From Botryllus schlosseri (lineage: Eukaryota): a stretch of DNA of 64,000 bases. Made by a program: the position numbers and the translations under genes. Below are positions 11,901-64,000 of this stretch, one piece after another (the first letter of the stretch is position 1; every line of letters begins with the position of its first letter). The stretch spans positions 9,672,001-9,736,000 of the forward strand of contig CM119373.1 of assembly GCA_051294905.1 (NCBI GenBank), given 5' to 3'. The notes under the pieces are model-generated. The model did no database searches and was not told the DNA's origin. It saw only the letters and a program-made list of their open reading frames with translations.

Positions 11901-14900
11901 TAGGGTCAATGAAAACCTTGGAATTTCAATTTCAATTTTCATCAAATTATGTCGCATTATCGTAGTAGCATAATACTAAAAATCGAAATGATGACCAATA
12001 GTTTGGGTCGGTAACTTGCCGTTTTCATATAATATCACATTCTGTTGTTACGTCTGTTACGTCACTTTTGCCAATGCCGTTTTTGTTACTATTTAAAAAC
12101 ATTATATCATTTGGTAGTAACATTTCAAGAATGGGATATTGTTGTCGGATGTGAAACTAGCTAGCCCCATCAATCACGTCTGTTCACCTATTCTCGATGT
12201 GATCACTAGCAAAGTATCTCTGTTTGCGTATTGCTCTATTTTTCAATTCCTTATCCCACTCAATTTACTTCAGAGTCAATTGCCATGATATATTAATTGA
12301 TTTGCATATAGTTTTATTTGCTCACAAGATTAATCGCCACCGCAACTGATCGATGTGCTTACGGAGCCGTACTTGTTTATCGGGAAATAGAGGGAATGTA
12401 ATTTCAGTGATTCTGAAATTCCTGAAGGCAATTTGACTAAAGTTCCTGGAATTCATTGCTCGAAACCATCGATCGTATATATATTTGGTGGCATAGAAAT
12501 GTTCGTATGCCAGAAAAAGCTTAGAACGTTTTTTTTAAATAATAGGGTGTAGCCTACTTAAGCAGGGGTGTAGCAAACCTTTTGACTTGGACAGTGATAC
12601 ACCACTACACCAGTCGTCTTCCCTACGTCACGGTGTACATTCGTGACGTCACCTCACTAATAAAATCTACACTTCCCGTCAAAAAATAATCGTGGATACG
12701 CATATGTGCTTGACATGAGATGTGATGTATCATAGCCCAGTCTCCAGTGGGCGTGACGCCGACTCGTCAGTAGTACTGTAGAGTAGGGGTGTCCTGTGAC
12801 AGTATATTGACAAGAGGGTGAGATACGAATAACGAAGCGAAACCACGGGTCATACACAGGGATGCCAGTTCCACCATACCAATAACAATTGGCAACGACA
12901 ATTGGGACACTTATCAGTATCATCAATAAAGTAAGATATCGCACTACGCATCATTTCCGTCAATAACTGGTGCGCGCAGACCGAGAAATCTAGGTTTCAG
13001 AATAAATTTCAAATTTATTCAAACTCATCGTGCGCCAAGTCAGCACAAGCATATTTAACTGATTTTAACGTTTTGGCCCTCCCTTAGCCCAACTGAGGAT
13101 GTATCGAATGAATTAATCTAAAATATATTACAAACTTGTTGAATGGGCCAGGGTCGTAATGAATAGAGTCCGACTCGAGTCACGATTTTCTGATGTCTCG
13201 ACTTGACTAGAGTAATTTTCTCAAAATACGAAAATGACTCGACTCGACTCGAGCCAATCCGTGTATTGACTCGACTTGGACTCGGGTCATTGCACATCAC
13301 TCGAACCAAGTCATATGACTCGAGACTCAGACGGCCAAGACCGACATTTCATTGTAATTTCGAAGAATAGTAAAGTTACCTCCCTATTGGGATTTGGTCT
13401 GTTGGTACTGGTACTTAAAAATGCGACCAGAAACTGCTAAGAGTGAGGAAAATTAGTAGGCCTATATTATAAATGCGAACATTCGATTTCACCAAACAGA
13501 GTTATAAAAGTGGGTTTGACAAGACTTTAACTGGAAACTGAGCAGTCAGCACAATGACTTGTACACGGACTCGACCTTTTGTCTTGATTACTTGGACTCG
13601 GACTTGACTCGGTGGTGAATTGAAAATGACTCGACTTGGCTCGATCCAAAACTACAAAAGTGAGATTGAATTATGACTCGGAGCCTTGTGACCTGGTTAC
13701 AACCCTGTAATGGGCCGTGCACAATCCACAATTGGCACTTCTATGCGGAACAGGGGGATTTTCTATTCGGACCTCATGTTGCACATTCCTGTTATAGAGT
13801 ATATAGACGGTAAAAACTTTAAATGGGTGATGCCAAGCTAAAGTTTGTATATTAAAATACAGTACGCATGTTAAATAATATATATGGCTGTAGATAGAAT
13901 AGTCGTGCTAACGCGAAAATGGAATTTTATCAGTCCATAAAATATTAACACCTCAACACTTAGCCACACAATCCTATTCAGATTTTGCGGTTATTGCCAT
14001 GTTTGATGGGAAGAAAACGTTTTAAATATAATGACAGTTCTGTGAGGTCAGCCGCCTTTTCGATGCAACTTGAGGACGGAATTTCCCATCAATATTCAAT
14101 GCAACTGTACGAATGCGATGTGGGTGGTATTTTCCGATTTTGTGCCAGATATAGTTTGAGCATGTGCGTACAGTTGTGCACTGATATCATGGTAGACCGG
14201 TAGTACGACATTGCTCGTGCCAGTTCATTTACGATATATAAGTTCAATTTCTCATGGCACGAAAGCAATTTCTGTATTGCCCACATTCATAATAAATCCA
14301 GAGTTCAGCCGATGGCACACACGCGTCATCTAGTCATGGCCTATGAACCTGGCGTGGGTACTAAATTCTGGAATATTGGAAATACCAGCATATCGGTGGA
14401 ATTCATAACATAACACCGTTGCGTAATGCACCCACCAAGATTGGATATCTAATGCAAAAGGTTTAGAAATGATCGCGTGTCCCAAAACACATATCTCGTG
14501 TGTCATGTTCCCGTAATTCCAAGGTCCCTCGCCCATTACTAAACGGTTCCTCGGCCAGAATATCCGAAATGGCAACAGACCGAGATGACTGAATTCGATC
14601 CGAAGACCTTTATATATTTGTCATGATTTTCTAAAAATCCTATCAGACACGGGAGTCATGTGGACCTAAATTGCGGCATGGATGTCGGATGTTGCTACCA
14701 GTTTGCAACGTTTATCGAAGGTATACTATCGATACAGAGTAAACGTCCAGAAGTTACCGGTTTCGGCAAATGTTTTGGCTCGATATTGTTGTATTTTTCA
14801 TGCCTATCGTCGGATGATGGATATTTATAACCTCGGATCAAGTGAGCTTAAATTGTAGCGTAATAACATAGCAGGTCTAATCGCTTTGCGTACACAGTAG

Positions 14901-20900: not shown

Positions 20901-23900
20901 CTCAGTGTGATATCGAGGGTGCTTGTGATATCTGAGAGGATCGGGAAGAAAGGCGAACAACCAAAAAAAATGAGGGAGAAAACTTTAAAGTCCTTCCCCG
21001 TTTCGAGTGCGTATGAAAAGGACGACCGCAGAGGTCAAATGCCGGAGCAGTGCGCCTTATGGACTGTACTTTGCGGCATGCTTGACATTGCCACAATTGA
21101 GTAATTGGGGTACGCAGCCAGTTTGGCGTCTACATAATGACGCAAACATAATACTTGTATGACATCATCATTGTACAACGGGAGCAACATAGTTAACCTA
21201 ACACCAGGTCCCTATAGCTACAGTTATATAGAATTGAAAGTAAAAAGACATTCCGTGAAATCAGATGAAGTAATATTGAATGATGATAATTAGGGCGATT
21301 ATTTTCACAAAATAAGTCCAAATTTTGTTAAAATTGTAGCGTTGGGTCGAAGAATACTCAAAATTGTTGACGAAGTCAAAATTTTATTGCAACCTGTATT
21401 TCGTTGAATCGTAGATGTTTGCACTGTCGGTGAACTTATCATTTGACATTCTACCTACAGCGTGTAGCCTACTTCATAGGCCTACCGTTGTAGACGGCCA
21501 CGACATTGTCTGCTTATTGTGACTCATGAACAGTCAAATGAAACACTTTCTACCAGAGAATGTAGGAAAGTATCTTTCGTTGTAATACAATTGTTTTTTA
21601 TTTCCGCTATAATACGTGATGGAACTACTGGAATTCTTCATAGGCCAGATTTCGTTAAAATAAAAAGTTTTCATGTATAATTTTGTCGGTTTTCAATTCA
21701 ATTTTTTCCGGTCAAACAACTTCGTACGGACAGACAGCTCCAACCAGAAATGAAGAGAAGTAGTGCAATTCTCACATTATGCATGAAAACACCTAATTTG
21801 CATACGTGAGGTAAAAATTTGGTCAAAAGTTAGTTTTAAAGGTCGAATAATGCTAGGATTTTGATTTCTTGGGTCAAATTCATCCGTTCTTTAGGTAAAA
21901 AATGTCCCTAGTGATAATACTATATATATAATATATATATATTCATTTAGAGAACGCGAGAGGCTGGATTCAAATCAACTTGTTTAATTTAGCATTGCGG
22001 AATATTAGTTTGCGACAGTGGTGGTCAACCTTTTGCGTTTGCGAACCGGTCAAATTTTAAAACGTATTTTACGAACTTTCATAAATCAACACAACGCAGC
22101 TCAAAACTAAAAGTGGCCTTCCGTTTAATGAGAAATTTCTGGGTATCTTTTTGATGTCACACCTGTTGTGCCTACAACGCAACGTCATGTTAAAACCACC
22201 AACTCGATTTGGATTACTATGGGTTTTCAAAAAATAGGAGTTCGTTGTTTGCTAGATTCTATGAAATAAATGCACCCAGATGAATTCAACTATAACAAAT
22301 ATTTGAATCATGGTGTTGATAATAATTATGTAATTATTAAACTGGTACCGCCCGCGTGCACACTTCACTACAACGTTACGCGATGAGCTATTTACCACGT
22401 TAGCAATGACGATTGGTCCATTATAAATCCATTTGTAGTGAAGTATCGCGACGTCCCAGCATCTGAAAGAAATAAAAATTACGGACGTATTAGCGTCATG
22501 CTAAATTGAATCGTCAATATCCTTTATGCTACAAATACTAACACTTCAAAATTTGATAATGAACTAATAAACCTTTGAATACGTGCCCGTGAATAGAATA
22601 CCGTGTGCATGCCTCTTTTTTACTTCGCCTAGGATAGGTGAGTGTCTGATTTCGAAGAAGACTCCAAGTCGTTTCGACACCTTCCTATCTTTCATTGCAT
22701 GGAATTGAATTGACTGCTACAGGTAACCTAGCTATTGCAAACCATAGTGCCAGGATATCAGTGCTTTGAACAGGAACTTCCAGTACCGTAGCCCCTACAG
22801 TCATGTCTCGATCTGTCCCGAGTGAAAAAGCCTCTCAGTTACTCATGTGTACTTCTTGCACCAGTGAACTTGCAAGAACGCCCAGCAGGTCGCACAGAAT
22901 AGATCATTCGTGAACTCAGTCATCGCATTGTCACGGAGGTATTTCAGATAGGTCTATCAGGTCACACCAGTCAATGATAAGCTGGCGTGAAATTCTCGAC
23001 ATTGTGAGTGTATAAATGTATGACGTAAACTGAAACATCTCGAGCGTAACACCAGCAGATATTTACATTGATAAAGTGCAACAAAAACAACTCTGCTCAA
23101 AGTATGGACGAACTGATGCTATCAGCTTGATTAACAGTGTGAAGTCTGACGTACTTGACACTAGACATACATATTCATATTATTATACCGCTAAAGCTAC
23201 AAATTACATCGAATTTAGTGGGTCACGGTATATTGCCAGAATTATTATAATTATTGAATAAAATCTAAGATGTTATCAAGTGCCAAGTTGATATCTATAT
23301 ATTCAAGCAGACGTAAGCAGAGTGTCCGCTTCGGTGGGTTAAAACGGCATAAAACACATGCAGCTGTTTCTCACCTACGACCATTTTATGTGGTCAAAAT
23401 CATTGTTTATAAAAACCAGAGACGACTTACTGTGTATCTGCTATCGTCGCTCGTACGATCGCCCACGGAACAACGAACAACACCGGTGCACCTGAGGAAG
23501 TATTTGATAGGTTAGGATCGTAACTTAACACCTGGGTTTCCAATTCAGCGAAGTTCGTTTGACGTAATGCGGAATTTGCGGGGGTTTATCGCCTTAACAA
23601 GCGATTGTTTTTAGTTCATCGTAGAAATTGTCATCACTGATTGAGAGCGAAAGTTAAGAATTACATATATGGCAGATATTTCACCAAATCGATTATATCG
23701 ACAAATGAGTGTGCACTTCACTTTTCTCCATTTTTTCATGCAACTTTTTTCGACTTTTCATGCAACTTTTTGCAAGTTTTGTCTATTTTCCATACAACTT
23801 TTTACTCGAAATATTTGGCATCATATGTTAATAGATCGCTTGAATATTTCGCTGTCGGTAAAATTTGAGGACCTTTCTGATGTGACGTACATTCAGGCTA

Positions 23901-37600: not shown

Positions 37601-40600
37601 GCGCGTTTCCCTAAGCTCCACTACATGGAGGACTATTTCAATACTGGTGTGAAATGACCATTGATGTCGAAATACCATGAATGCTGCAACCCCGATACTT
37701 AACATGTCATATCTTTGGGCATAAAGATGACTCGATGATAGATGATCTTTATATTTCAAATAGCCTGCAATAAGTCGTATGTATCATTATTGCCATTTAT
37801 GGTTTGGTTCAGTATACGCATTGCGGTTTCGGTGATACCACTGTGTACACACTCCGTATAGCCACTAACCATGGCAAAAGTCACAACGCGATCGAGTGCA
37901 TCATAAAAGTTTGTTTTTGGAATTCATAGTGTTTTTCGACTACGGTGGTCATTTACACCATGTCATGCAATTTTCTTCATTATTAATCCGTAGCTGCCGA
38001 CTTGTAGCACGGCCCACTTCTAGGCTTTTACAAGACAGCGCTTATACACGGAACATACGTCTGACAAGAGTTGACAAGATTACGCGCAAATTTGTTATTT
38101 TCAGCGCAACGTGAATGTAAAACTGACATAAAATTAAATATTAAATCATCCAAACTGGCGACTGCAAGCGATGTATTGGGCTGATTACAGTGATTCCGCT
38201 CGACAATATTTCCCAAGAGAAATTTGTCAGACGGAGCGGGGCGGCGCGTAATAAATTTCTACGGGGCAGCCGAAATATAATTTGGTCTCTGCCGAAGCAC
38301 GTGGCTTGTTACTGACATCTGATGAAATTTCAAAATTCGACCTTGAGATACCAAAGGACAGTCGTTTTAAACCGGTGGGCAATGCACCACTGATGGATAG
38401 AACTCGGAGATAATGGTTAGGGCTGAGCCAAATAGGGTATCTAACAGATTCTGCATAGGGTATACGTGAATCATCCATTATACAAGAGGTTCTCTCATGA
38501 ACAGCCGTAACTTACATGTCATAAAACTAACTGTTGGGGTTGCTAGCATTCCGGTTGCACTTTGTGATATGATGATAAGCCGGCGCGAAATCTTTCCCTA
38601 TTATAAAGGGGGCTTGTCTAAAAAAGTTTGAGAACCACAGCATTACAACATCGTACATATTGTATCTTACAAAGTATACACCTGGTCACGTGATTGAATA
38701 CAGGACAAAAACATCATAGTCCAACTCCAACTTGAATCTGGATCAAAGGTCCCTAATCCATTTCCAATGACTAATCCAACCCCATTCTTATGTCTGTGGT
38801 TCGTTCAAGACTTTACTAATTTAGTTATAATATTCATATTCATAATTAAATCATATTTCCGATCCATATGTTGTATTGTGAGTAATAACTAGGGCAATTT
38901 TTGCAACTTTTGCAACTTTTTTTTACGGCTTCCGGCAGCTTCCTAAATACTCGGAAGATATGTAGAATGTTGTTTTAAGCTGCTTGAAGGAATCTTACAG
39001 TGCAACTTTTTGCAACTTTTGTCCATTTTTTTTCATGCAACTTTTTGAAACATTTTGCAACTTTTTCGATATTTCATGAAAGTATTTTTGATTTTGGTGA
39101 AATACACGACCGAATTCGACTGAAATACCGTGAATCAGCACTAAAGCAACGCTCCTACGGGTATTTCGGGAGCTGAGCAGGAAAGTTGACCTTTTTATTT
39201 TTTAGTCAAACTGGGAAGCTGATCTTTTTTTTAGCCAACCGAGCAAAATGCTGGTCTTTTAGTGAAACTTTTGTGAAAAAATAAATGCAACTTTCCACGG
39301 ATTTAACTGCAACAAAAACTTGCCCTAGTAATAACCCTACACTATTAATTGAATAATTATTCCGCGGATACATGAATCGATGAAAAAGCAGATCACAATA
39401 TTGATTCTGTTCACCGATTTATTTTTAGTTACATTCACGGGTATCGTTAGATCTGCTCCACAAAACAAAGATCACATATACTATTGGGAAGGATGTGCAG
39501 TCAAAAGCGTATATGCACAATAACAAAATAGCTGGGTAATGAAAATTTTGATTTAGAAATTGATATAATCGCACCGTGATGTAACGAGCGAAAGATAGGC
39601 CTACGTCAAGAGGACGTTGATCCAAAGGTTGAAGGACAGGTACGCATTTTGATCCTTCTGTAGCCATGGCTCCGTCGTTAGGTTTAATGCATTGTCAGAT
39701 GCGCCACCTGACTCCGTATTTACGGACCGAAAGCGGTGTAAGACAAAACTAATAGAATGTGCAATGTGCATCCATAACATGTCTGCGCTGGGTGACGTCC
39801 CTGATAAAACGTCGTTACAACGCCCGAATGCAATATAGAGAGAAAGAACTATATCTGGCAGTCCAAGTTAGCAATAAGATAGCTGTTACCGAGTGCGTGG
39901 CAGGCCAGAATTGCGTCCAATCTTGTAATTCATTTCAATGACCATCATATCGGACAGACTCAGCAGTTAATAGAGCGTGTCAATAAACATCAGGATGTAC
40001 CAATGACGGATTAGGCCCTAGCTGGCGTGCAGTATTTGACACCTTATCTGCCGAGGCGGCAGTTTAGTCAGGATATTATTTTCGTAATATGGTACAATTA
40101 CAACTTTGCCCGGGATGTGTTCTCGTGTCGCTGTGTTAGCTTACAGTTCATTCGTTACCATTTGCTGCCGAGTTCACGAGATTTAACAATATCACGCCCT
40201 CGCGCAGTCCGTCCAAAAGTGGAACACTCTTACCTACGGTACCCGTCATTTACCAAAAACTCATTCGGAATAATATAAGTCGATTCGTGTCAATTCTAAC
40301 GTTCTAAAATCACGGCAGCGGAAGAGATCTAGCGGTTCGGTGCAGGTTTACACGCCAGTGATCGGTTACCCATTAATCACTATGCTGTGCTCAATCGCCA
40401 AAGCTATCTAACATCATATTCCAAGCATAAGACTCCCGCTAAAACGCACTATAATTACACACGCTAAACAAACAAACAAGACACGATACCTCAAATATGT
40501 AGAACATTAAGACAACAAAACATCAAACCAACACCTGGTTTCAGTTGAGGATAAGCAAAACGAGGCAGAACACCGCAGTATCAAGCAAGCATTACAAAAA

Positions 40601-49042: not shown

Positions 49043-51919
49043 ATATAGACGATATTTATCCGCACCACGGCTTTCTATCCGCACAGGTGCGTACCATCCC
49101 ACTGGTTGAAAAACCCGCATATTTTACTTCATGTGAACTGCGGGAATATTTTTTCAATGAATCCATGAAACATTGTCGATTATTTATTATCATGCCGGTA
49201 TGTCCTTTATTTTAATTTGTCCATATCGATGTTTTGTCTACGGAATGTCAGCCGTAGTAGTGTCCGTTCACCGCCTCTAATTTGCTCCTTGTAGCAATTC
49301 GTTTGGATGCCGTTGATCTCGACAATATATTACTGTCCCTCACATCAGCTACCAAACTGAGAACGCGGTGGACCTATTCCAGCCAGATATACTGTGTAAA
49401 AGTTTAAAATGCTATGAGACTATATATAAGTTCGAGAATCACTGCGTGTCATATGAAGCCGATGCGGTAGCGGGATGTTAAACTCTATCTGCGTGACGTA
49501 TTACAGTTCAACGTATGTAGACCGCAAATACATTTACATCCAGAAAGAAACATACAGTAGTCGGTCAACATTGTAACTACATGTCACATGATTCAAAATG
49601 CACTACAAACTAACGTATACTCGATATAATCCAATAACTTTCGGCGAGACAGACAGATTAGCACTCTGGAATCAATGCTGTATTCGTGAGCTGCTGGGAT
49701 TTTCTTTGTCCATGCTATGATTTGAGTCAGTCGCCAATCTCTGATTATATTATTGCACACAACATTACACGGAACACATTGATTCCATACCTTTCCGATA
49801 GACAAGTTATTCGAGTATCCGCCTCCGAAGCAATATATTAGCGATTAATATTGACGGAGACAGGCAAAAGTCACAAAAACTAATATCTAGGCTAGACTTT
49901 TCCACGCCGCGCACGCCTATGAAAAGATATCTTTCTCGCAAAATCAATAAAATGGAACATGATTTAAATATAGAGTAAACGAATATAGCATCCGCTTTGT
50001 ATCTGACTTAACCCATTCGTAATCCCAGTTATTCAATTTTTGGAATATCAAAACACCTCCCAGAACGGCGGTATCTTTCTGTATGAATATTTACAATGCT
50101 TCATGAAAGATAGGTATATCGAACGAGGTTAAAACCTATCGTCTGTCTAACAGCGATTTTGTAGCGCTATGTAACTCCTTCGTACCGTTATAATTAGGGA
50201 TGGTGTGAACGTGAGGTTCACGTTCGCGTTCTGTGTGTGAACCTCGGAAATTTAGAGGTTCGCGTTCACAACAGAACCTTGGTAGGTTCTGCACTGTGAA
50301 CCTTTTTCATATATTACAATTTTCACTTCATTATAACATATTTGGTTCTTATTAATTGCATTTCAACTGCGGGCCACTCTATGCATGGCGCTGGCAGCAT
50401 TAAAAATTAACGCTATAAACGAGCATGCACCTTGACAATCTCAAAAGTTTTACTTGCTTTGTAACAAATGTTTGCTCGAAATATTCAGCTTTCCGTTTGT
50501 GAATATTTAGTGTCTCTCTGCTGTGAGTTTGACTTGCGATCACACAACATCACGAGCGAAATACGTAGTCAGCGAATGATGCTTATATTCAACCAATCAA
50601 TGAGATTGATATCGTTTTCTGATGCAAAAAAGCTAGCAGGGGTACGGGGCAATCTTGACTTCATATCTTTACTGCATCACGAGAACCAAATCCTTGTGAT
50701 TGAGGTGTTGTCTACTGCTGTAAAACTTGTTAATGGGGTAATATCGGTAGCAAGTTTAGAAACCAGTTTTACACTCTGCTCAATATCAATGTAGCGATAG
50801 GCTACTCAGACGCCGAATACATTGTCCGGTCTGGCCTAGACCGTTAAGGCGTAAGCTTATATTCCCTGTTAAGTCCTCGACGAAATTGTTGGCAAAGCGA
50901 CGGAAGATATTGATCTAATAGGAGTATTATATCCTTTGATTGCCTCAGTTGAAACATTTAGTGACGTTTAAAACGCCAACATGTACTTCTGCATTGTGAC
51001 ATGATGTGGCCCGAGTCGTCGCTACACTGTAAATCTAAAAGGTGGAAAAAATGGTAGGAAAATGGAGGAAGATACTTTCTCCCCATTTATCCACCGTATC
51101 TCCACCACATATGGAGGAATTGAGAGGGTGGCAAGAGGGAGGAATGAATAGTCTACCATATTTGGTGGAAAACTGTTATTGACATGGTGGAAATCAGAAA
51201 TGACTGTTCGCAAACTGTCGTATTGCCCAATTAAGACATAACAGTCGATACTGGCTCATAGTTAATAACGTCATCAGACACGAATTTGGAGTCGAGTGTT
51301 GTTTTTCACTCAATATAAAGTCATAGTCGCATGCATTTTGGAATATTGATAAAATATTAAACAGTTTTATTCAAGTGGTTTAGCCAGTAGAGGGATTAGT
51401 AAATTTGAAAATGTCTGACTGCTATAATGGATTGTGATAATTATTTCAAGATCCTGCACGACCGTAGCATAACCAAAACGTATATTATTATTGCCAATAT
51501 TCTCACCAATGAACCGTGACCGGCGGTAATTCAGCATCCGGGACTCTGACAATTTGCTATTTCGAATATACGGGGAAGCGCTCTCCGTCGTCAGTCAGTC
51601 AGTCGACAGAAAAAGATATCTATATTCATTGATTTTGAGTTAATCACAGTTATGATTATTGTTGAGTGTAGTTCATAAGTTGTGTCATCTGCTTAATCGA
51701 GTTCTTATGAAGTACCGGTATCGCTCGTGACTAAGAATACAATGAACTTGCAATAAGCAGTTTGCAGTACCTGAGAGATGAGAATGATGCATCTGATGAC
51801 CCGATACTGTTTTTCTGCTGATATCTTGTTTGGTGGGAAGGTAATTCAAGTAACCCAACGGGTGATTATAATGCAAGAAATTATCTAGGAAGAATACATT
51901 TTCATATTCATGTATACTA

Positions 51920-54849
51920 CAGACATGGGGTGATTACTTTATGAATGTAATCGATTGCGATTACGATTACTTCGAAATCTCGCGAGTACGATTACGATTA
52001 CGATTACAGCAAAATCAGGAAGTAGTCGATTACTATTACGATTACATTGAAAAAGTAATCACGATTACTCACGATTACATTTGTTTTGCTAATGACTGTA
52101 ATCTTAAATTATATATGGGAAGACAATACAAGGATTGCGATGAAAAGGCTTAATGTGATATCAACTTTCTTCATCATGCGTCATTTGCTTATTACGTCAT
52201 AATATATCAATTGCCCTACTTTATAGTGGATGATTTATCGCATCCAACGATTTGCATTATTGCCAGGTCTTTACCTGCCGCGCCCCAAATTCCTTAATAG
52301 AGTGGGGAGCGTGCTCGAAGGGGACTCAAAAGTATTTCGTAAACCAACATATATTATAGAGCATTTTCGAGAATTTAATTAATTCTTGTAAATGTTTTTC
52401 GAGCTTTGCGATTCAAATATCTCTAGTACAGTGCTCACCAACGCGGAGCAAATGAGTCGCTCGCGGTCGCTGTAGTAGTGGTGGCTTTTGAGGTGGGCGA
52501 GGTGGGCGGTCGCCAGGGGGGCTGGCCGAAGGGCTCCCCTATTTGGATTATGCGCTTTTTTCAAGGATAATAACGAATAAACTTGGAAATCCGTGTAAGA
52601 CAAGAATGGGATTCCGTACAGATGTGTCAATCATCATCAAATCTCTGCATTTGTTAGAAAAGTACCATATCCCGATAATCATCACGTCTCTGCATGCGGT
52701 AGAATTGCTTAGTTTTAATGTCGTGTATCTTTGCACACATGAAAAAATAGACATGGCCGAATCCAGCACCTGGCCAAACCTTGATAGATAGATACTAATA
52801 GCAGATGCGAAAGAGGGGTCTGGGGGGCGAAGCCCCCCATAAGTTACGGATAGATACTTATAGGGGGGCTCCCGGTAAGTCTCGCCCAGCCCCCCACCCC
52901 CACCCCGTTCGTATGGCAACCACTGCGCTGTAGCAAATATCCAAATGAGAGATTTGATAGTTGAAGCTCGTTTCATATGAGCAGCAGTTGAACATGGGTC
53001 GGCCGACGCCAAGGAACATACGAACGCAGTCGCTTGGGGCATTGCTTGTCTTTGCCCACGCGGCGTCTCAACGGGAATCTATATAGTTAATATTCTCGAG
53101 TCTAGACGCGGAGATCAGCGCTTCTGTGCGCACTGCAGCAACGCAACTAAGCTTGGAGGAGCTGGTGTGAGTCCCTGCGAGTGAGCGTTTTTTTTCTTGG
53201 TGGGGGGCGAAAACCCGGTCCCGTGCTCTGATTGACTTACTCTAAGTGAATAAATCCAACTGAACATGGATAAACGACGGGAGTACGAGGTAACCCGTCG
53301 GTCTTCGCAATAATCAGTACACACTGCACAAGAAGTAGCTTTTTGTTTCAAAACAGTTGGTGACCCCTGCTCCAGTAGATAGCTGGGTTTGAAATGCATA
53401 CCTCTTTCCCTCAAGAAAAAACATACATAGGCTATATTTTATGGGAACAGGCATTTCGTTGCCGGTCATTACCGCGCCACGATCCCACAACACACCAAAA
53501 CACATATGCAGTTTCGGCCAACACGCAACTCCACGGGATGTGATACCAAAGAAATACCTTGGCCGAAACTTAGGGTATTCGTCCATTGTCAATAGTCGCG
53601 CTGAGTGGGCGGGACTAATAACTATTGTCCTTCCAATCTGGGCCCACAATGCAAATGTCATCCGGCGCATCCACAAAAGAATAAAGTCGTGACAATTTGT
53701 GTATGCGTCTCACAAAAGATATTCTTTTAGTCTGCTACGTTTGGGCGAGTACAATATCTTGTGATTATACAACGGACTGGAGGTCGCGAATTAACAACAT
53801 ACGGTAATTATAACAACATACCAGATGCTATGAATATGAATTACGTAAATCTGACACTCGGGGCTCAGAGAGGTTATAAATGAATAGTAATATGATGCAA
53901 TTACCAATATTATTGACGAAATTCACTTTTGAAAATTGACCAACGGTTGGACAGGGGAATTGCTGTTTTGGCTGAATTGCTGATTGTAGCTACAACCCCC
54001 GCTAACATGTCAGGCTATATAAGCGGATGGTTATGGCGGCAGGTCCAAATGCTAAGTAACGAACTTTGAAATAACGATTGACGCCCTTTTCAAGTAGTTA
54101 TATGAGAATAAGATATGGTTAACATAAAAATTCTGCCTTCAACTTAATACATATACAGCGAGCTGCCATTACGAGAAACGGCTAAGCTTGGCTCGGTTAT
54201 GATATATATCAGCAGCTGTTTATTTGTAATGCTTCGTTGTGGAAACTGCAATGTCTTATTCTTCGAGTACAAAATTCCGAATCTTCGTCAGGTGCACTGC
54301 ACGTGCGTACGTAGGCCTCCTGCTCGCCAAGCGGCAATGGTAAACTGCGTTTAACTAAGCACAACCAAACATTAATACATAAGTTACTAGTTGAAACTAT
54401 AGGCAGAGTGGTGATCAATATCCTGCTGCGAGGTAGCGGCTTCTGTAGTGTATTGATAACCTGATATATACCACGGGAGGTGTTCTTACAATCACACTAC
54501 AATGTCCATCGCATGTCTGTTTACCATGTGTGAATACTTGTTACGCAATGACGAGCGGAGCTAAAACTTCTGACGTAATAATGAGTCAGTGGCAGACGTT
54601 TGTGCTAACGCTAACGTGGTATATTATCTCATTCTTGTTCACGAATACTCAGTTTATGTCATAGTCCTTGTACAAACAAAAAGTAATCGTTCTTTCACAA
54701 ACTAATCGATTAGATATGGGAAGTAGTCGATTACGATTACGATTACTTCGCATTTTTTTCGAATGTAATCGATTGCGATTACGATTACTTCAAAATGCTG
54801 TAATCGTCGTAATCGATTACGATTACTAATCGCGATTACCCCATGTCTG
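51920..54849. mobile_element. Non-autonomous hAT element (2930 bp) nested in the CACTA element
   Basis: 12-bp TIR CAGACATGGGGT; exact TSD GTATACTA at 51912-19 and 54850-57; GATTAC/GTAATC subterminal arrays. Confidence 0.9.
52778..52897. repeat. Young interspersed repeat with twin GC hairpins (copy 1; element probably extends further right)
   Basis: 120 bp identical to 63881-64000. Confidence 0.85.
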
Positions 54850-55255
54850 GTATACTATAGATAGAGCTATTGGGTATTCGTATTCAAACTGGTTCTGTAT
54901 TTAATTTTACCATCAGGAGCTGCATATTTATAATTTGGATTTTCATTGCGACTGTTGCAAGGAGACATTTCGTTTGAATGAAAGGAAATCTTCTGATATA
55001 TTTCTGGCGTCACAATTTTTGTAAATGTGAGAATTTACTATGAATACATTCAGTATGATTCTGCCAATACTAAACGACGGATCACGGTCACGGACGATGC
55101 ATAACTTGTCTTCAGTCCCGCTCAGTCCGACGTTTAGTATTACAGTATCTGTGGTTAATCAATATAGTGTTATACTGTCATTCAGCATAATAATTGATAC
55201 CAGTGCGTTTTAGTTGTGAATTGAATGTTAAAATGTAAAATGTATGACTTAACAG

Positions 55256-55392
55256 GACATCAGTAGAGAAATTACTATGAATGTGTTGAAATGTCCTATC
55301 CTTGCATGCATGAACCAGTACTTGGACAGGAAGTCTCTATTGGCTCAGGTTCGGCGCTGCCACTATATGTGTACAAACTGCAAGTGTTACGG
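55256..55392 (+). pseudogene. Degenerate C2H2 zinc-finger-like exon upstream of SAMD3-like exon A: KCPILACMNQYLDRKSLLAQVRRCH
   Basis: cttaacag| and |gtgagt. Pattern C-x4-C-x12-Q-x4-H has Gln where His is expected. Ends in phase 2, but exon A needs phase 1. Confidence 0.45.
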
Positions 55393-55451
55393 GTGAGTTT
55401 AGGCTTGACTTCATTTATCAATTTTTTCACCTCTATACCCAATTTTCCTAG

Positions 55452-55773
55452 AAAAAGTACAAAGCGTTTGCGACAGCAGCATCACTAGCGACTCCCTAAC
55501 TGTGGATTCATCTGAACGTGATGTGATGGATAATTCAGTTGAATCATTACTGGATTCATCTGAATCTATTGTGACGAATGATTCAGTTGAATCATCACTT
55601 TCACGTTCACACCAACGATGGCCTGTGGTCTACAACATGACAACTTTTCCTCAATACCTGGTGCAACGCATCAAACACCTAGTACCTGGGAGCGCTGGCA
55701 ATATTGTAATTCCATCAAGACTGAGAAAAGAGATCAGGACAATTCTCTTTCAAGATCTTTTGCAATATACTTT
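55452..55773 (+). CDS. SAMD3-like exon A (Ser-rich repeat, then WPVVYNMTTFPQYLV...QYT)
   Basis: ttttcctag| acceptor, TT|gtaagt donor, open frame, first in-frame ATG at 55526. Confidence 0.75.
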
Positions 55774-58700
55774 GTAAGTATAATTCTATTCAATTCATCC
55801 ATGGTATTTTGTTTTGAAACTCATGCATGCATTTCGTTAGTTTGGATAGATATCAGCTAACTACATGCCGATCTATCTAACAGGTACCCCACTGCGCATC
55901 AGTATAAAGAAGTATGCTCGGCATTATTAAGAAACTATCCAGTTTTGAAAGACAATAACGAAGAAAATTCCAGCTACGTAAGTCAGCTGCATCCTGCATG
56001 TACCTGTAGTCCTGGGCAAATATCCATAGTAAACTGTCCTTGCCCATTACAGGTGAATTCCGGACTACTGTATGTTTTCATATCAGCGTATTATACGCAC
56101 CAATATCGACGGCCGCTAACACATACTAATTGAATTACGTGTTGACGCCCACACAAATTTCCGCACATTGCCCAGGCCTGATATAATCTATTCTTGTTGA
56201 CGATTTTTGTCCTCTTTTTTGAGATTTTGTCCTCTTTTTTGAAAATGTAGGTCAGATTTTGAGCAAATTGCGAGTGATATGCCGCAAATTAGCACAGAAG
56301 TGACGCTCCGGCGGGTATTTCGGAGTGAAAAACGGTGATTTTAGCTCTGAGCGAAAAGATGACCTTTTTTTTTTTAGTCAATCGATCGCAAAGTGAGAAA
56401 AATTCACCGGTTTTTGAGAATTCTGCTCCGGTTTTGCAAGTTGCAAATTTCTGAAAAAGTGTCCTCTTTTTAGATTTCCAAATTATGGTAAGCCTAAATA
56501 TGATAAGCTTGCCAAAGAGTCCGGAAGCGCTGTCAATTAGCGAGTCACTGATGTCTGGTGAACAATTAAATACGCGCTGGTATTACGCAGCCTCGGCGAC
56601 AGTTTTTGCAAATCAAAATGTCCGAACCTGCGCCACCTCGTAAGTCGGCGCCTATGGTTATCTTTTGTCATGACTATACCTGTACACTGTACGCAGCTTC
56701 AATGTAGTTCTGAAGGCAATAATCACAATTCCAGAATAACTACAAGATAATCCGAGTCCAAGTCGTTATGTTCAATGTTAGGTTTTCAGTTCAATCCACT
56801 TTTTGTCAATTCTGCTAAAGTGATTGGCTCCCATCCAGAATACAGTAATTTTCCTCAGTCTTAACAGTTTCTGGCCCTATTTTGCCAAGTATCAGGACTC
56901 ATACTCGAAATAACTATTCTTCGAAGTTGCAATGAAAAATTGATTCGAGTCGAGTCATTTAACGTATTTGTAAAAAAAAAAGAATTGAGTCAAGTCGAGT
57001 CACCCAAAAATCGCGACTTGAGTCCATGCAATGGAACCACCTCAAAACAGCCCTCAAAGTCTGAAAATCGGCATTGTTGCCAACAATCGCTCAACGAAAT
57101 TGACCATTGGTATGTTCATTGTGTCGTGGCGCTGCCAGTGTTGAAACAATGCCGATTTTCAGACTTTGCGGGCTGTTTAGTTTTTTTTTCTTGCTTTTAG
57201 TATTAGGACCCTCTGCAGAGTTGAGTGTAACAATAATTGCAATTTCTTCAGGGCTCGTGGCATATTGCCTTAAAGCAGAAGTTCAAGGACTATCGAAGAC
57301 CGTTACAAGCTAAATTGGTGAATCAGATGAAGCAGAAGTATGGTACAAAACGAAAGAATGTCATTGAGGAAGAAGAAGAAACCAGCAGCTCAAGATGCAA
57401 AAGAGCCAGGGTTGTAAGTCCAATTAATTTTTATCTTGGTTTTGAGATGAGCTAGTTAAATTCGAATTTTTCAGGATAATTTCTGTCCGGATCTTGTCGA
57501 ATATCAACACAGCATTGATAATCACATAAAAGATATACAACAAGAAGTGAAAAAGAGGGAACCAAACCAAGTCACGCTCCTAGACCGAATGAAGAGGACC
57601 CACCAACACCGCAGAAATCAGATTTTAGAAGGGGCTCAGTTATCGGAGATACTCCTGACCTATCCAGCACTATTGGATGCTCAATGGGTAAGTACAGTGG
57701 TCTATAGTATGAATTGTCATTGCTACAGGTGTATCATATTTTATGTAACATATTAAGATGTTGAAAGAGGCTGAAACCTTGATTGGGTTTGATATTTTGA
57801 AGCACACAACACAGAGCCGCTACAATGTAGCTCAGGGCAAGATAAAGTGGCCTAAAGTTCCCGAGACTATTCAAGGATTACTTGGTGAGAATATTATTTC
57901 ATGAAATTGTGTGGCATTGCAAATTTTCCGCTAAGAACTTTTTTCGAATGAATTCAAGTGCAGTGGCTCTCTAACTTCTACCGTTGCGAGGCAATTGTAG
58001 AAACTTGTTTGACTTGCGCCTCACCAATAATCGTGGCTTTCACAATAACATTGTCTCGTACCAGCCGGTTACAGTTGGATTCATTTCCGAAAATTACACG
58101 CGTTCAAAATAAATATCGGAACACTAGAAGTCAGGGTTGTAATGACTCGAGTCATGACTCTACTCGAGTCAAAATTTTCTGATGACTCGAGTCATTTTTT
58201 CAAAATACGGAAATGACTCGACTCGAGTCAATCTGTGTATTGACTCGACTTGGACTCGAGTCATTGCACATGACTCGGACCAAGTCATTGACTCGAGACT
58301 CAGACGGCCAAGACCGACATTTCATTGTAATTTCGTAGAATTGAGAAGTAACCATCCTACTGGGATTTCGTCTGATTGGTACTGGTACTTGAAAATGCGA
58401 CCAGAAACTGCTAAAAGGGAGGAAAATTAGTATATTATAAATGCTAAACATTCGATATCACCAAACATAGTTATATAAAGTGAGTTTAACAAGACTTTAA
58501 CTGGAAACTGAGCAGTCAACATAATGACTTGGACTCGGACTCGAGTCATGATATCATGACTCGGACTTGACCCTCTACTCGATGACTTGGACTCGGTGGT
58601 GAATTGAAAAGGACTCGACTTGACTCGAGTCAATATAATAAAAGTGAAATTGACTTGTGACTCGGAGTCTTGTGACTTGGTTACAACCCTGCTAGAAGTA

Positions 58701-60097
58701 ATCATCGATGGTTCTAATAACCTGCTTCTGCTTTATAGGTGATGGAGTGGTGGATTGGCGTGCTGGTATACCAAACATGTTTGGAGAAGGATATGACAAT
58801 TTTCTTCATATTGGAGAGGTAAGCTGTTCGTAGATAGATGATGTATTATGTATAATACACATTGTTAAAACTAAACAGTTAGTTAGTTGATCGTAAACTA
58901 ACTAAGGTTTATTTTTATTTGATTTTGAAAATTCAGTAGTTGTGGTTCTAGTTCAGTGGTTCTCAACCGGGGGTCCACGAAGCATTTTCAGGGGGTCCGC
59001 GAAGCCTCTAAATTTATACCATAGTTTATAACGTAATTTGTGTTTGTTTTTTTAATTAGGAAAATCATGAGGCCGTCTCGCTTCATTAAAAACTCCAAAC
59101 TCACATCAACAGAATGGCCGTCTGATATGAAATGTCCTGCTGTGAGACTCATTTTAATTGCTGAATTGCCAAGAGCCTACTGATACAAAAATTTTCAAGA
59201 AAAGTCTTTTTTTGCATGCTCCCGCGGGGTCCGTGACGGTCCAAAAAGGGTCCGAGAAGACAAAAAGGTTGATAACCACTGTTGTAGTTGTTGATTTTGA
59301 AAATTCAGTAGTTGTAGTTCTAGTCTGGTTTCCACCTCGCCATCTCATCCGCGTAAGCGGTGTCTTACAAAATTCCTAGAAGTGGCCCGTGCTGCAAGTC
59401 GGCAAATACGGAATGAAAAATAAATAATACCGACCCGGTGTAAATGACCATAGTGGTAGACCAGTGTTTCATAACCGAGTCACGAGTCAATCCATATTTC
59501 TGATATGCCCCAACAACTTCTACCAATAGAAAGTGTCAAAATTGCTCAATTAAATAGTTTCATAGACCTGGTACAGGCGTCGCATAGCTTTAGTAATGGA
59601 TTGGAGCTCATGAGATTGAAATACATACTTCATCGCGACTGAAATATATACTTCATCGCGACCAAAGCAGACTGACTTGACAAGATTATTTTTAAAAGTA
59701 TAAATCAAATGAGCAACACTTCGTGACACAAAGTCATGTTTATAACTTGTGCATTGGTAATATAAATTGTCCTATGTACTAAACCTATCTCGATATCATA
59801 ATGATCTGAAGTCCGAAGATTTCATAGTAATATATCTTTCAGGTTTCTATCTCTCCATATCCAACGATGGTCTACAATTTGCAATGGAGCCTGCACTTGG
59901 ATGGACTCGTCTTCTCAAAAAACATTGAAAGTTTTGATGAAGCACTTGCTCTTCTGATCGCAGCTCATTGGATATTTAACATCAAGTTTCAGAAGACTAT
60001 CAAGCACACTCTCACCTTCATTTCGTCATACCTGCTAAAGCTGCCTGGCGTAGAGCTGACAAATTCCGTTGTGAGGACTACCAATATGTTGCCATAA
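55526..60097 (+). CDS. SAMD3-like protein of the transposon-associated type (no SAM domain in the intact part), 7 exons, 392 aa from ATG 55526
   Basis: Join of 55526-55773, 55884-55977, 57252-57413, 57475-57687, 57758-57884, 58739-58818, 59843-60097 = 1179 nt, all GT-AG, no stops. Motifs WP-x-x-Y...YP-x-x-x-QY-x-x-V-x-x-AL-x-x-x-YP-x-L...W-x-x-x-LK-x-KF-x-x-YR and C-terminal AL-x-LL-x-A-x-x-WIFNI-x-F match, from memory, the family annotated 'SAMD3-like' in fish and invertebrate genomes. Structure is more certain than the family name. Confidence 0.75.
55884..55977 (+). CDS. SAMD3-like exon B: YPTAHQYKEVCSALLRNYPVLKDNNEENSSY
   Basis: ctaacag| and |gtaagt; 94 nt, phase 2-0. Confidence 0.85.
57252..57413 (+). 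CDS. SAMD3-like exon C: GSWHIALKQKFKDYRRPL...RCKRARV (basic, NLS-like)
   Basis: tttcttcag| and |gtaagt; 162 nt, phase 0-0. Confidence 0.85.
57475..57687 (+). CDS. SAMD3-like exon D: DNFCPDL...MKRTHQHRRNQI...LLTYPALLDAQW
   Basis: tttttcag| and |gtaagt; 213 nt, phase 0-0. Confidence 0.85.
57758..57884 (+). CDS. SAMD3-like exon E: MLKEAETLIGFDILKH...PETIQGLL
   Basis: tattaag| (weak) and G|gtgaga; 127 nt, phase 0-1. Confidence 0.72.
58132..58691. mobile_element. hAT MITE of the GACTCGA-repeat family, in SAMD3-like intron 5
   Basis: TIR CAGGGTTGTAA; exact TSD CTAGAAGT; clearly homologous to 13149-13707. Confidence 0.92.
58739..58818 (+). CDS. SAMD3-like exon F: GDGVVDWRAGIPNMFGEGYDNFLHIGE
   Basis: ctttatag| and |gtaagc; 80 nt, phase 1-0. 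Confidence 0.8.
58954..59281. mobile_element. hAT Charlie/Buster-like MITE in SAMD3-like intron 6
   Basis: TIR CAGTGGTT(C/A)TCAACC; TSD TTCTAGTT/TTGTAGTT (7/8). Confidence 0.85.
59335..59460 (+). mobile_element. Partial copy of the same SINE in SAMD3-like intron 6
   Basis: CTCGCCATCTCATCCGCGTAAGCGGTGTCTT...CCCGTGCTGCAAGTCGG. Confidence 0.7.
59843..60097 (+). CDS. SAMD3-like terminal exon G: VSISPYPTM...FDEALALLIAAHWIFNIKFQKTIKHTLTFISSYLL...LP*
   Basis: tctttcag| acceptor, phase 0; 84 codons plus TAA. Confidence 0.85.
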   Translation, partial: VSISPYPTMVYNLQWSLHLDGLVFSKNIESFDEALALLIAAHWIFNIKFQKTIKHTLTFISSYLLKLPGVELTNSVVRTTNMLP

Positions 60098-60116
60098 ACA
60101 ATGGAACTGTCATCAT

Positions 60117-61323
60117 TAGGGCGATTTTTTTTTGACATGTCAAAAAAAGTCAAAATAAGGTCAAAATTTTAGCGTTAGGTCAAAAAATGTCAAAATTGAC
60201 AAAAATTTTCGCAACCTGCATTTTATTTGTATCGTAGATTTTGCGCAATCGGTGAACTTATCGTTTGACATTTTACAGTTTGTAGCCTACTTTATAGGCC
60301 TACCGTGGCAGACGGCGCATTGTCTGCTCGTTGTGAATCATAAACAGTCAAATGAAACAAATAGGTTGACACGGTGTTATGCTCAGCGTACCGAAATATT
60401 CTAAGTGAAGCAAGACTGCGTGGGCATTGCATGGTTCTTACAAAAATTGCAATGTATACCATTATTGTCAGAATGAAGCAACACGGTGTGTCACCAGCAG
60501 TGTACGCACGCACAACTTCAGTGTTGCCAGCCAATAGCTGCTACAGTTGAACGTTCTTTCTCCATTCTTCTTGCTGTTGTTGTTTGTATATTCATGGTGT
60601 TTGTCGACTACAATGGTCATTTATACGCCAGGCCGATATTCCTTATTTTCGATTCCGTATCCGCCGAGTATCTGCCGACTTGCAGCACGGCCCACCTAAC
60701 TATGCTTTTTATAAGACACCGCTTACGCAGATGAGATGGCGAGGAGGAGCCTATAGATAAACCTCCAACACAGTTAGGAATTCTGGAGTCGGCCTCGGTC
60801 GGACTAGAACCTAAAACCCATTGGTGTTGTAGCTGTGGATTATCCCACTACGCTATCTCGCCACATCTTCATCCTTGGCAAGCTACTTAGTAAAGACAGA
60901 CACTTTTTACCCGAGAATCAGGGATATCTAGAACTAGATATCTAGATATCCCGGCCGAGAATGCAGGAAAGTATCTTTCGTTGTACTACAACAAATTTTA
61001 ATTATTTTCACCATAGTACATCATGTATACTGGAATTCATCATAGGGCCAAATTTTGTTAAAATAATGTTTCGTCATGTAAAACTTTGTCAGTTTTTGAG
61101 TCAAACAAGTTTTTCAGGGAAAACTACTTCGTAGGGACCGACAATTCAAACCAGAAATGAGGATAAGTAGTACAATTCTAACATTTTTTGGGAAAACACC
61201 TAATTTGCATACGTTAGGTCAAAATTTGGTCAAAATTTACTTTTTTAAGGTCAAAAAATGTCAAAATTTAGATTTTTTAGGTCAAAATCTTTCGTTTTTT
61301 AGGTCAAAAAAAAAATCGCCCTA
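60117..61323. mobile_element. hAT element of the TAGGGCGATT family, 20 bp after the SAMD3-like stop codon; contains a SINE
   Basis: TIR TAGGGCGATTTTTTT; exact TSD GTCATCAT; GGTCAAAA subterminal repeats. Confidence 0.92.
60575..60866 (-). mobile_element. Near full-length tRNA-derived SINE
   Basis: Head ATAGCGTAGTGG (A box) and GGTTCTAGTCC (B-box-like), body CGTAAGCGGTGTCTT...GGGCCGTGCTGCAAGTCGG, CAA/ACAA-rich tail; homologous segments elsewhere in the window. Confidence 0.75.
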
Positions 61324-61338
61324 GTCATCATAGTTATG

Positions 61339-61580
61339 TAGGGTTACCATACGGAGGTTCGAGCGGGTCATTCGGAAGTCGATTGTAAGTGCCTACTTTT
61401 AATTTTAGTCAACACCACTAAATTTAAGTAAAAAGATGGTAATTCTGGAGTCATCACTTTCATTCAACACCAAAAGTTTTCCAGCAAAAAATAGCAAAAT
61501 ATGCTGTCATTCTTGATCAACTAACTTTCCTGAATTGGTAAAATTGTCCTCCTTTTTGATTCCGTAATATGGTAACCCTA
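61339..61580. mobile_element. hAT MITE of the TAGGGTTACCATA family
   Basis: 13-bp TIR TAGGGTTACCATA; degenerate TSD TAGTTATG/CAGTAATG (6/8). Confidence 0.8.
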
Positions 61581-61709
61581 CAGTAATGGCTGTTTGAATT
61601 CGCTTGATAAAATGCATGAAATACCATACTTGTATGTTTTCAATTGGATTTGTATTTATCGGTATTGCATATAGCGCAGCGATGTGTGGCAGCTGACAGA
61701 TAGGTTGGG

Positions 61710-61806
61710 GTGGAAGGTATGTCCCCCATATAGGGTGGAGGGTGTTCCCCCATATAGGGAGGAAGGTATTCCCCCATATAGGGAGGAAGGTATTTCCACC
61801 ATGATG
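61710..61806. repeat. 24-bp subterminal tandem repeat (about 4 units, CCCCCATATAGGGAGGAAGGTATT) near the right CACTA end
   Basis: Read directly; produces the spurious (YLPPYMGE)n ORF on the minus strand. Confidence 0.85.
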
Positions 61807-61954
61807 GGGGTGGATTTACATCCCACCATGAATGGTCAAAAGCGTGAACCACTTTTAATGGATGAAATCTCCACCTTTTAGAATTACAGTGTAGGTATCG
61901 TGTACGTTAATATAGGCTATCACTTCATTGAAAGATAGAGTTGGAATTAGCAAT

Positions 61955-61974
61955 ATGACGTCACGTGACGTCAT
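61955..61974. promoter_or_regulatory. Perfect 20-bp palindrome ATGACGTCACGTGACGTCAT = two full CRE octamers overlapping a central E-box
   Basis: Motifs read directly; regulatory function unproven. Confidence 0.35.
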
Positions 61975-63277
61975 GAGGTTCACGTTCGTGTTCACACAGA
62001 ACCTTTCAAAAAGGTTCGCGTTCACACGAACCTGAACCTTTCAGAGGTTCACACCATCCCTAGTTATAATACAACCGTCGTCTGCGAGTCTTTTTGTACG
62101 TATTTTTCAAATCATTGGACAAGGGCATATATCTCATAACAAAAATCTATTATCGCGTGGATTAGGCCTACGTCTTCACATTTCACAATATAGTTCCATT
62201 CTCTGGGGAAATTCCCGAATCTACTTACGCCGAATTAAGGATGCACTTTACCTACACGCGCGCGTGCAATAAGCTGTTCAAAAATTGTTATCTAATATGA
62301 TGAAATGCTGCGCTGCAATCTACTAGCTCTCGTGTTGTTCGATTGATATTGAAGATATTTCAACTTCAGTTGATAATTTATACCCATACGTCTGTCGCTA
62401 AATCTGGGTATATGCTGACTTGATATCATACCCCTATTTTGTAAGCGCTGCTAACGGCCAGTTTAAATGAACCTCAGAGAAATATACGCTAGGATTTTGG
62501 AGTCACACTCAGTCGGAATATAACCTTCATGAATCTACGTCACATCATATAATTTACTGTGCCTTTGTAGCAAAAATCACGTCGTACTGTTCCGGCATTG
62601 AACGTTTAGACCGCATTCCACGATCAGATGTTGGCATATTCGCGAAGCTGACACGCAGTGAACTATATTTCAGGTAGGTAACAACGTAGTGGAGTTTTCT
62701 GGTCCGCAGTGTGGAAACGGAGTCAACATCAGAAAGGGATAAGAGTGATTCTAAGAAATCCCATCGTATTATCTAAAATTGACGAGACGAATCAGAATCG
62801 CATTATCAACCCAACTCGGTTCCAAAACGCAGCCAAGCCGATAGTGACTGGCGGACAGAATGGAAGTAACTCGATATTGTGTGATTCTACTCCGATTTAC
62901 GCAATACCAACCCACCACTTGGAACATACAGTGCTTCCAACCTTGACTATGTAACGCGAGCATGAGCATGTTTAAACCATAAGATACCTCAATAAAGGCT
63001 ACTGATTACTTATTGACGGCAGTTGAACTGTTGACTTACCTATCCGGATTAAAGCATATTCCTGTTGATCAATCCACCAACTGCGAATATTTAGGCCGCC
63101 AAATTGGTACCAGTTACCTCTCCATTTGATACAAATACCCCGCCAATAATATGACGTGAACGAAATTCATGAGGGCAAGGGCCCAAATAAGAATCCTTCG
63201 TAAATATTTCGTATACCAAAATGAAGTACTATATAGCTGGGCAATACCAATTACCCGATTCCGAGTACTAACTCGTT

Positions 63278-63456
63278 CCTCGCCACGTGATCCGCGTAAG
63301 CGGTGTCTTATAAAAAAACCAGAAGTGGGCCGTGCTACAAGTCGGTAAATACGGAATAAAAAATAAATAATATCGGCCTGGTGTAACATGACCAATGTAG
63401 TCGAAACACCACGAACATCAACAAAAAAACAAGCAAACAAGCTAACAAACAAACAA
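63278..63456 (+). mobile_element. 5'-truncated copy of the same SINE with (CAAA)n tail
   Basis: Shares CCGCGTAAGCGGTGTCTT...GTGGGCCGTGCTACAAGTCGG with 60575-60866. Confidence 0.75.
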
Positions 63457-63880
63457 TTGAGTAGTAAGCTTTGAGTCGGGTCGGGAATTTGAGCACAGCA
63501 TGCCTTGGAGTCATAATAATAGTAATACCGACCTACAAAGTTTTAAAAATGCATCTTATTAGCGGCCACAACGAAATAATGTATTCCTGACCGTGACCAT
63601 TTCGTAGCGCTTTGTGGCAATGCCGTCAATCGATTACTAACTCACAGAAAGGTGGCTTCGATGAACATGCATAACCTCATGTAACGTATTCAAGAAACGA
63701 CTCGACACCGTGGGTAGAACTCTATATTTCGGTGATCGAATATCCCTGAATGTGAAGGGCGACTATTTTTGTTACTCGAAACATAAATAATCGACTGTCA
63801 TTACCCGACTCGAATCATTACAAGCGAAATTCTACTCGGATTCAAGTACACGAATGATTGCGTCCAGCATTACGAACCAG

Positions 63881-64000
63881 ACCTTGATAGATAGATACTA
63901 ATAGCAGATGCGAAAGAGGGGTCTGGGGGGCGAAGCCCCCCATAAGTTACGGATAGATACTTATAGGGGGGCTCCCGGTAAGTCTCGCCCAGCCCCCCAC
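63881..64000. repeat. Young interspersed repeat with twin GC hairpins (copy 2, cut by the window end)
   Basis: Identical to 52778-52897. Confidence 0.85.

Follow-up and report, generated by a model that had tools for sequence, protein, structure and literature searches.

A spliced SAMD3-family gene within a transposase-less transposon of Botryllus schlosseri hints at an origin of the SAMD3 family as transposon cargo

The stretch of DNA analysed in this work comprises 64,000 nucleotides of contig CM119373.1 of Botryllus schlosseri (hereafter the window, numbered from its first letter), and contains a terminal-inverted-repeat transposon that lacks a transposase and carries an intact, spliced gene, whose product is supported as a member of the SAMD3 family (Table 1). 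The transposon, referred to here as the CACTG element, reads CACTG... from 51025 and ...CAGTG up to 61891, which gives it the 5'-CAC...GTG-3' termini of the CMC (CACTA/Mirage/Chapaev) type. The consensus of the terminal inverted repeats (TIRs) across both ends is CACTGTAA(A/T)TCTAAAAGGTGGA, the variable base being the lone mismatch in 22 bp, and the TIR 21-mer has only two sites in the window with up to three mismatches allowed, where the chance expectation is 0. Outward of the TIRs the complementarity extends three further bases, CTA and TAG; since these flanks are complementary, there can be no direct duplication of 3 bp, and the palindromic TA alone fits as a target-site duplication. The left 250 bp contain eight copies of the motif GG[TA]GGA and the right 250 bp seven, against a window mean of 0.19 per 250 bp, so that the two terminal segments hold 15 of the 49 sites of the window, about 40 times the background; three 24-nt tandem units (61722-61797) lie within the right array. 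The TIRs, the TA flanks and the subterminal arrays are genuine, and the TIRs and arrays are far above chance. All three features had been named in an original prediction made from this DNA, as 22-bp CACTG-initiated TIRs, TA on both flanks and subterminal repeats, and each was recovered here, the TIRs by the window search with the 21-mer and the repeats as GG[TA]GGA arrays at both ends.

Table 1. Positions in the window of the CACTG element, its cargo gene, the element that hosts it and the later insertions.
Feature	Positions	Strand	Description
CACTG element	51025-61891		22-bp inverted repeat at the two ends, 1 mismatch; length 10.9 kb
Left TIR	51025..51046	+	CACTGTAAATCTAAAAGGTGGA
Right TIR	61870..61891	-	1 mismatch to the left repeat
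Putative 2-bp target-site duplication	left 51023..51024; right 61892-61893		TA
Left subterminal array	51041..51191		8 x GG[TA]GGA or complement, spacing ~24 bp
Right subterminal array	61709..61875		7 x GG[TA]GGA, spacing ~24 bp
Exon 1	55526..55773	+	Provisional ATG 55526; Ser/Asp-rich 48-nt tandem duplication (55503-55598), then first half of N-terminal helical domain
Exon 2	55884..55977	+	Canonical splice sites, RNA joints
Exon 3	57252..57413	+	Basic/acidic linker, KRK...KRAR resembling a nuclear localization signal
Exon 4	57475..57687	+	Helical module with the match to SAMD3 residues 283-336; left out of one RNA contig
Exon 5	57758..57884	+	Canonical splice sites, RNA joints
Exon 6	58739..58818	+	Canonical splice sites, RNA joints
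Exon 7	59843..60097	+	Stop TAA 60095-60097
Host element, older, hAT-like	50195..62062		Ends TAGGGATGGTGTGAAC; 8-bp duplication GTTATAAT at 50187-94 and 62063-70
Secondary insertion N1, hAT-like, 2.9 kb	51920..54849		Ends CAGACATGGGG...; 8-bp duplication GTATACTA at 51912-19 and 54850-57
Secondary insertion, hAT-like miniature inverted-repeat transposable element (MITE), 1.2 kb, 3' untranslated region (UTR)	60117..61323		Ends TAGGGCG...; 8-bp duplication GTCATCAT
Secondary repeat, intron 5	58132..58691		Copy at 13149-13707, 83% identity

The cargo gene has seven exons on the plus strand that add up to 1179 nt (392 codons and the stop), and all of its introns are GT..AG; the 7-exon, 392-residue open gene predicted between the TIRs was thus upheld, with a start codon that is provisional. 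The ATG at 55526 sits within the 48-nt tandem duplication, and because the Ser/Asp-rich frame stays open for 39 codons further upstream, the start is provisional and an additional upstream exon is possible; an upstream exon akin to the N-terminal exon of a relative was searched for and not found. Verification of the six splice junctions by RNA-seq had been proposed, and all six were present as joints in the runs X1, X3 and X24 of the same species (region 55000-60400), in reads of which at least a part stems from another allele or a sister copy. Most of the RNA reads match the window at no more than 95-99% identity and show fixed differences from it, and the 13 exonic differences listed between the window copy and the transcripts comprise 5 synonymous and 8 non-synonymous changes. 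In addition, 25 reads depart from the window at 60116 and resume with letters matching 61332 onward, which corresponds to the empty site of the MITE in the 3' UTR; since these reads skip the MITE, the source of at least part of the transcripts is an allele or sister copy that lacks it. A search of DNA runs for junction words was uninformative on insertion polymorphism, as every run holding such words had the identical three of the five words sampled. In one RNA contig of run X1, exon 3 is joined straight to exon 5 (57413 to 57758), a form that omits 213 nt in frame, namely the SAMD3-matching module.

Protein searches were run exon by exon, and the most informative exon was the fourth, whose 71 residues were modelled with AlphaFold2 from an alignment of 22 sequences as a small all-helical bundle with a mean predicted local distance difference test score (pLDDT) of 88.9. 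When this model was compared with the 550,129 models of AFDB Swiss-Prot, human SAMD3 (Q8N6K7) ranked first, its residues 283-336 superposing with 37% identity and a root-mean-square deviation (rmsd) of 0.9 Å, and mouse SAMD3 (Q8C4H2) ranked second with 35% identity, likewise at 0.9 Å, while all matches below rank 2 were unrelated (E >2). In the ESM Atlas the top fold match was likewise a SAMD3 cluster, with a template modelling (TM) score of 0.91 over 70 residues, followed by three chordate clusters of 308-369 residues without a SAM domain. The AFDB clusters yielded 30 listed matches, all with probability 1.00, and those that bear names include SAMD3 and SAMD3-like; several are chimeric gene models in which a Gypsy integrase or a reverse transcriptase is joined on, a pattern to be expected when a multi-copy gene lies in repeat-rich DNA. 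From their accessions we take these clusters to include proteins of a sea anemone (A7ST68), cyprinid fishes, rotifers, a sea cucumber, a mussel and an aphid. No solved structure in the PDB resembles the exon 4 module by sequence or by fold. Therefore, the SAMD3-like label given to this protein in the original prediction is supported by the predicted structure of the central module (Swiss-Prot ranks 1-2 and the ESM Atlas top match) and probably holds for the protein as a whole, and our findings support the cargo gene as encoding a SAMD3 family member of 392 residues without a SAM domain. Vertebrate SAMD3, in comparison, has 520 residues including a SAM domain and is encoded by a single-copy host locus, whereas the cargo gene lies within a transposon; the offset of exon 4 between the two proteins is colinear with the addition of a SAM domain and linker at the N-terminus of SAMD3.

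The remaining exons gave weaker signals. Neither SAM_1 nor SAM_2 was matched by any exon in Pfam, which returned weak chance matches only for all seven exons; among these, DUF7648 (E 0.039, exon 2) was dropped after it was not reproduced on a relative with fused exons 1-2. A tyrosine-recombinase motif considered in exon 4 was rejected for misfit of its spacing. Feature searches of the ESM Atlas with exons 1 and 7 independently pointed to eukaryotic SAM, CIDE-N and DUF4769 clusters at weak scores (0.60-0.65), and the same search with exon 4 gave bacterial noise only. The structure model of exon 7 (pLDDT 49) was too poor for a fold search, and the exact look-up of its open reading frame (ORF) retrieved no record. 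Word-index protein searches with the exon 3-4 ORF of a relative, the exon 1 ORF and exon 7 retrieved no named or full-length relative, and scans of the metagenomes of the Joint Genome Institute (JGI) gave no match for the TIR or for exon 4.

Closer sequence relatives were found with HMMER, in which exon 4 was compared with 1.84 billion representatives and gave 23 matches at E <=0.001. Two of these are spurious (repeat proteins), and the remaining ones are exon-sized ORFs on short metagenome or assembly contigs, 36-50% identical and stopping at the end of exon 4, so that the 23 matches include no full-length relative. The relatives share the motif GED..S..HI..MQ.E..K..P....DRM.RT...RR..I..G..L..VL..YPAL. 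On one contig of 4.1 kb (L001), exons 2, 3-4 and 7 are all matched in unchanged order, and there are additional upstream ORFs, one of which (127-477) has no Pfam match and no counterpart in the window gene; by eye, we take it to resemble a CIDE-N or PB1-type domain. The nine contigs bearing relatives (L001-L009) are 0.5-4.9 kb long each, and neither CACTG ends nor an adjacent transposase was found on them. Two of the metagenome contigs, which we presume to be fish DNA, hold related gene segments (L005 480-2661 and L006 1889-4061) that are 98.5% identical over 2.2 kb with both flanks different, and these copies suggest that the family may be multi-copy in the source of these contigs too.

The sequence between the TIRs was also searched for a transposase. 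Of the open stretches that lie outside the gene, the ten longest (at least 95 residues, both strands) gave no transposase hit in Pfam, nor was a transposase domain found in any of the seven exons, in agreement with the earlier claim that no transposase motif lies between the TIRs. The copy thus lacks a DDE transposase of CMC type, as expected for a non-autonomous element. Its superfamily was approached through the ends. Dense subterminal repeat arrays are typical of CACTA elements, and the ends of Tc1-type elements read 5'-CAGTG. Animal CACTA elements combine CAC..GTG termini with a 2-bp target duplication (PMC6004678), and their Chapaev relatives have the same termini with 3-4-bp duplications (PMC4079192). 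Animal CACTA/EnSpm elements such as ENS1_Cis of Ciona savignyi and the CMC-NA MITEs (PMC6004678) share 5'-CAC...GTG-3' termini, short TIRs and a 2-bp duplication (putative here) with the window copy, which differs from animal CACTA/EnSpm elements by the absence of the DDE transposase and by the presence of a complete, intron-containing SAMD3-family gene. Taken together, the CAC..GTG ends, the putative 2-bp duplication and the subterminal repeats make membership in CMC moderately probable. The assignment to CACTA/EnSpm that had been made for this element is plausible as far as these three features go; the defining CMC transposase is absent.

An element of another superfamily whose target is TA or 2 bp long (ISL2EU/PHIS or Tc1/mariner-like) might present the same anatomy, given that TA, the hallmark target of Tc1/mariner, is the sole visible duplication and that no transposase is present to decide; we consider this unlikely, because Tc1-type ends are the reverse of those seen here, because dense subterminal arrays fit a CACTA element and because 5'-CAC..GTG-3' termini with 2-bp duplications match those of animal CACTA elements (PMC6004678, PMC4079192). 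Tc1/mariner as characterised by a TA duplication, 5'-CAGT-type ends and a DD(E/D) transposase does not fit, as TA is present but the ends are 5'-CACTG and there is no transposase. Transib/RSS-like (recombination signal sequence) ends were rejected for the absence of the required 5-bp duplication, and the TWA duplication of Harbinger or Chapaev3 was rejected since the two 3-bp flanks, CTA and TAG, do not form a direct repeat.

Regarding the place of the gene in this element, one explanation is gene capture, by which a non-autonomous transposon would have picked up a SAMD3-like gene of the host, introns included, as a passenger without a role in transposition, comparable to the transduplication of plant CACTA elements and Pack-MULEs. 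The SAMD3 family does have ordinary host genes in vertebrates, the cargo has introns and transcription of its own, and nothing in the window element links it to a transposase; against this, capture usually yields gene fragments, but the cargo here is complete from start codon to stop codon with a 3' UTR, and the family is multi-copy in the AFDB clusters across what we take, from the accessions, to be many animal groups. We therefore regard capture as improbable. A far more remote idea is that the element is of a novel type, mobilised by the SAMD3-like protein itself as its enzyme. It is the product of the sole gene in the window element, and exon 4 has E, D, H and R residues that are invariant across the family; nevertheless, neither an RNase H-like nor a recombinase fold is seen in the part that was modelled, a small all-helical bundle that matches no solved structure, and vertebrate SAMD3 is a single-copy host gene, so that we hold this idea to be highly improbable. 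The suggestion of an early domestication, which had also been raised, is weakened for the window copy: its TIRs are intact, it is riddled with later insertions, and the transcripts observed come at least in part from a copy or allele without one of these insertions.

Our preferred reading, to which we give about an even chance, is that of an old non-autonomous cut-and-paste element, most likely CMC, with a SAMD3-family accessory gene that belongs to the element itself and is moved in trans. According to this proposal, a CMC-type element would have entered a TA inside a hAT-like element; two later hAT-like insertions plus a dispersed repeat enlarged it from an estimated ~4.5-5 kb to 10.9 kb. 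The gene would be native to the element and not a captured host gene. Its protein is predicted to be nuclear from the linker KRK...KRAR, and may have an accessory function, reading the subterminal sites and/or bringing in the transposase, like TnpA in plant En/Spm, while mobility would depend on a transposase provided in trans by fuller relatives. The accessory role is proposed by analogy. In plant En/Spm, a single transcription unit gives rise by splicing to both TnpA and the transposase. The likeness to TnpA concerns the proposed role only, i.e. a non-catalytic protein of the element and many short subterminal sites at its ends; the cargo protein has no detectable sequence similarity to TnpA, and plant En/Spm encodes a transposase beside TnpA, whereas the window element has none. 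PIF/Harbinger elements, which encode a transposase and a Myb-like DNA-binding partner, share the concept of a second, non-catalytic gene that is needed for transposition and can persist separately; they differ from the CTA/TAG-flanked window element in their 3-bp TWA duplication and in their termini.

Several observations weigh against this reading of an element-owned accessory gene. The superfamily call draws only on the ends and the duplication length, and TA at both flanks is expected about once in 16 by chance, which weakens the call of a target-site duplication. Splicing is confirmed at the level of the family, and the transcripts are assignable at least partly to an allele or sister copy rather than to the window copy. 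The split of 5 synonymous to 8 non-synonymous differences involves too few sites to show purifying selection. Similarity to plant TnpA (Pfam Transposase_24) was absent, with no Pfam match at E <=1 in any exon, and no DNA-binding domain was demonstrated in the cargo protein, for which the leads were faint ones to a homeodomain and HTH_NOL4.

The element per se is an ordinary decayed non-autonomous transposon, and its interest lies in the SAMD3-family cargo. SAMD3 is a marker in wide use for natural killer (NK) cells and cytotoxic T cells, and the top-ranked literature mentioning it describes neither a molecular function nor an origin. Literature searches found no published description of SAMD3-family transposon cargo, in CMC elements or otherwise, and nothing relevant that links SAMD3 or SAM domains to EnSpm or to transposons. 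We tentatively propose, as a possibility that we hold to be rather doubtful, that the SAMD3 family arose as, and here remains, the accessory gene of a metazoan CACTA/CMC-like lineage, and that vertebrate SAMD3 is a domesticated copy in which a SAM domain was either acquired or retained. If this is true, SAMD3 would have a testable ancestral activity, the binding of transposon ends or of transposase, and the cargo gene would be the first described second gene of animal CACTA-type elements, a counterpart in role to plant TnpA. If relatives of SAMD3 routinely sit within transposon ends, SAMD3 would be another host gene recruited from transposons, and its biochemistry could be approached via the DNA or protein bound by the cargo.

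The surroundings of the CACTG element record several rounds of insertion. The element is inserted into an older hAT-like element that retains its own TIRs and 8-bp duplication though split by it. This host is non-autonomous, about 1 kb long without the insert, and has GTTCAC/GAACC subterminal motifs at both ends. The CACTG element has in turn received at least three later insertions, two of them with readable 8-bp duplications, and subtracting them leaves an estimated original core of ~4.5-5 kb. The insertion N1 has CGATTAC-rich ends, and a segment of it (52774-52897) matches the final 124 bases of the window (63877-64000) at 99% identity, which indicates that a young relative of N1 extends past the window edge. 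Further copies of the MITE in the 3' UTR lie at 9873-10734 and 21286-21919. Dispersed repeats occupy introns 2, 5 and 6, and an inverted partial relative of the intron 5 repeat is found in intron 2 (56751-56976).

Also in intron 2, a near-perfect hairpin at 57045-57178, with 34-nt arms that are 97% complementary and 66 nt between them, could be a tiny MITE or the source of a hairpin RNA. A repeat family of ~130 bp has four copies in the window (59331-59461, 60603-60748, 63277-63394 and 37946-38044), two of which bracket exon 7 in inverted orientation. Finally, in RNA run X1 the summed contig depth reached 10,000-33,000 over the intronic repeats at 56086-56628 and 58077-58800, compared with ~60 on the exons, from which it follows that these repeats belong to very abundant transcribed families.

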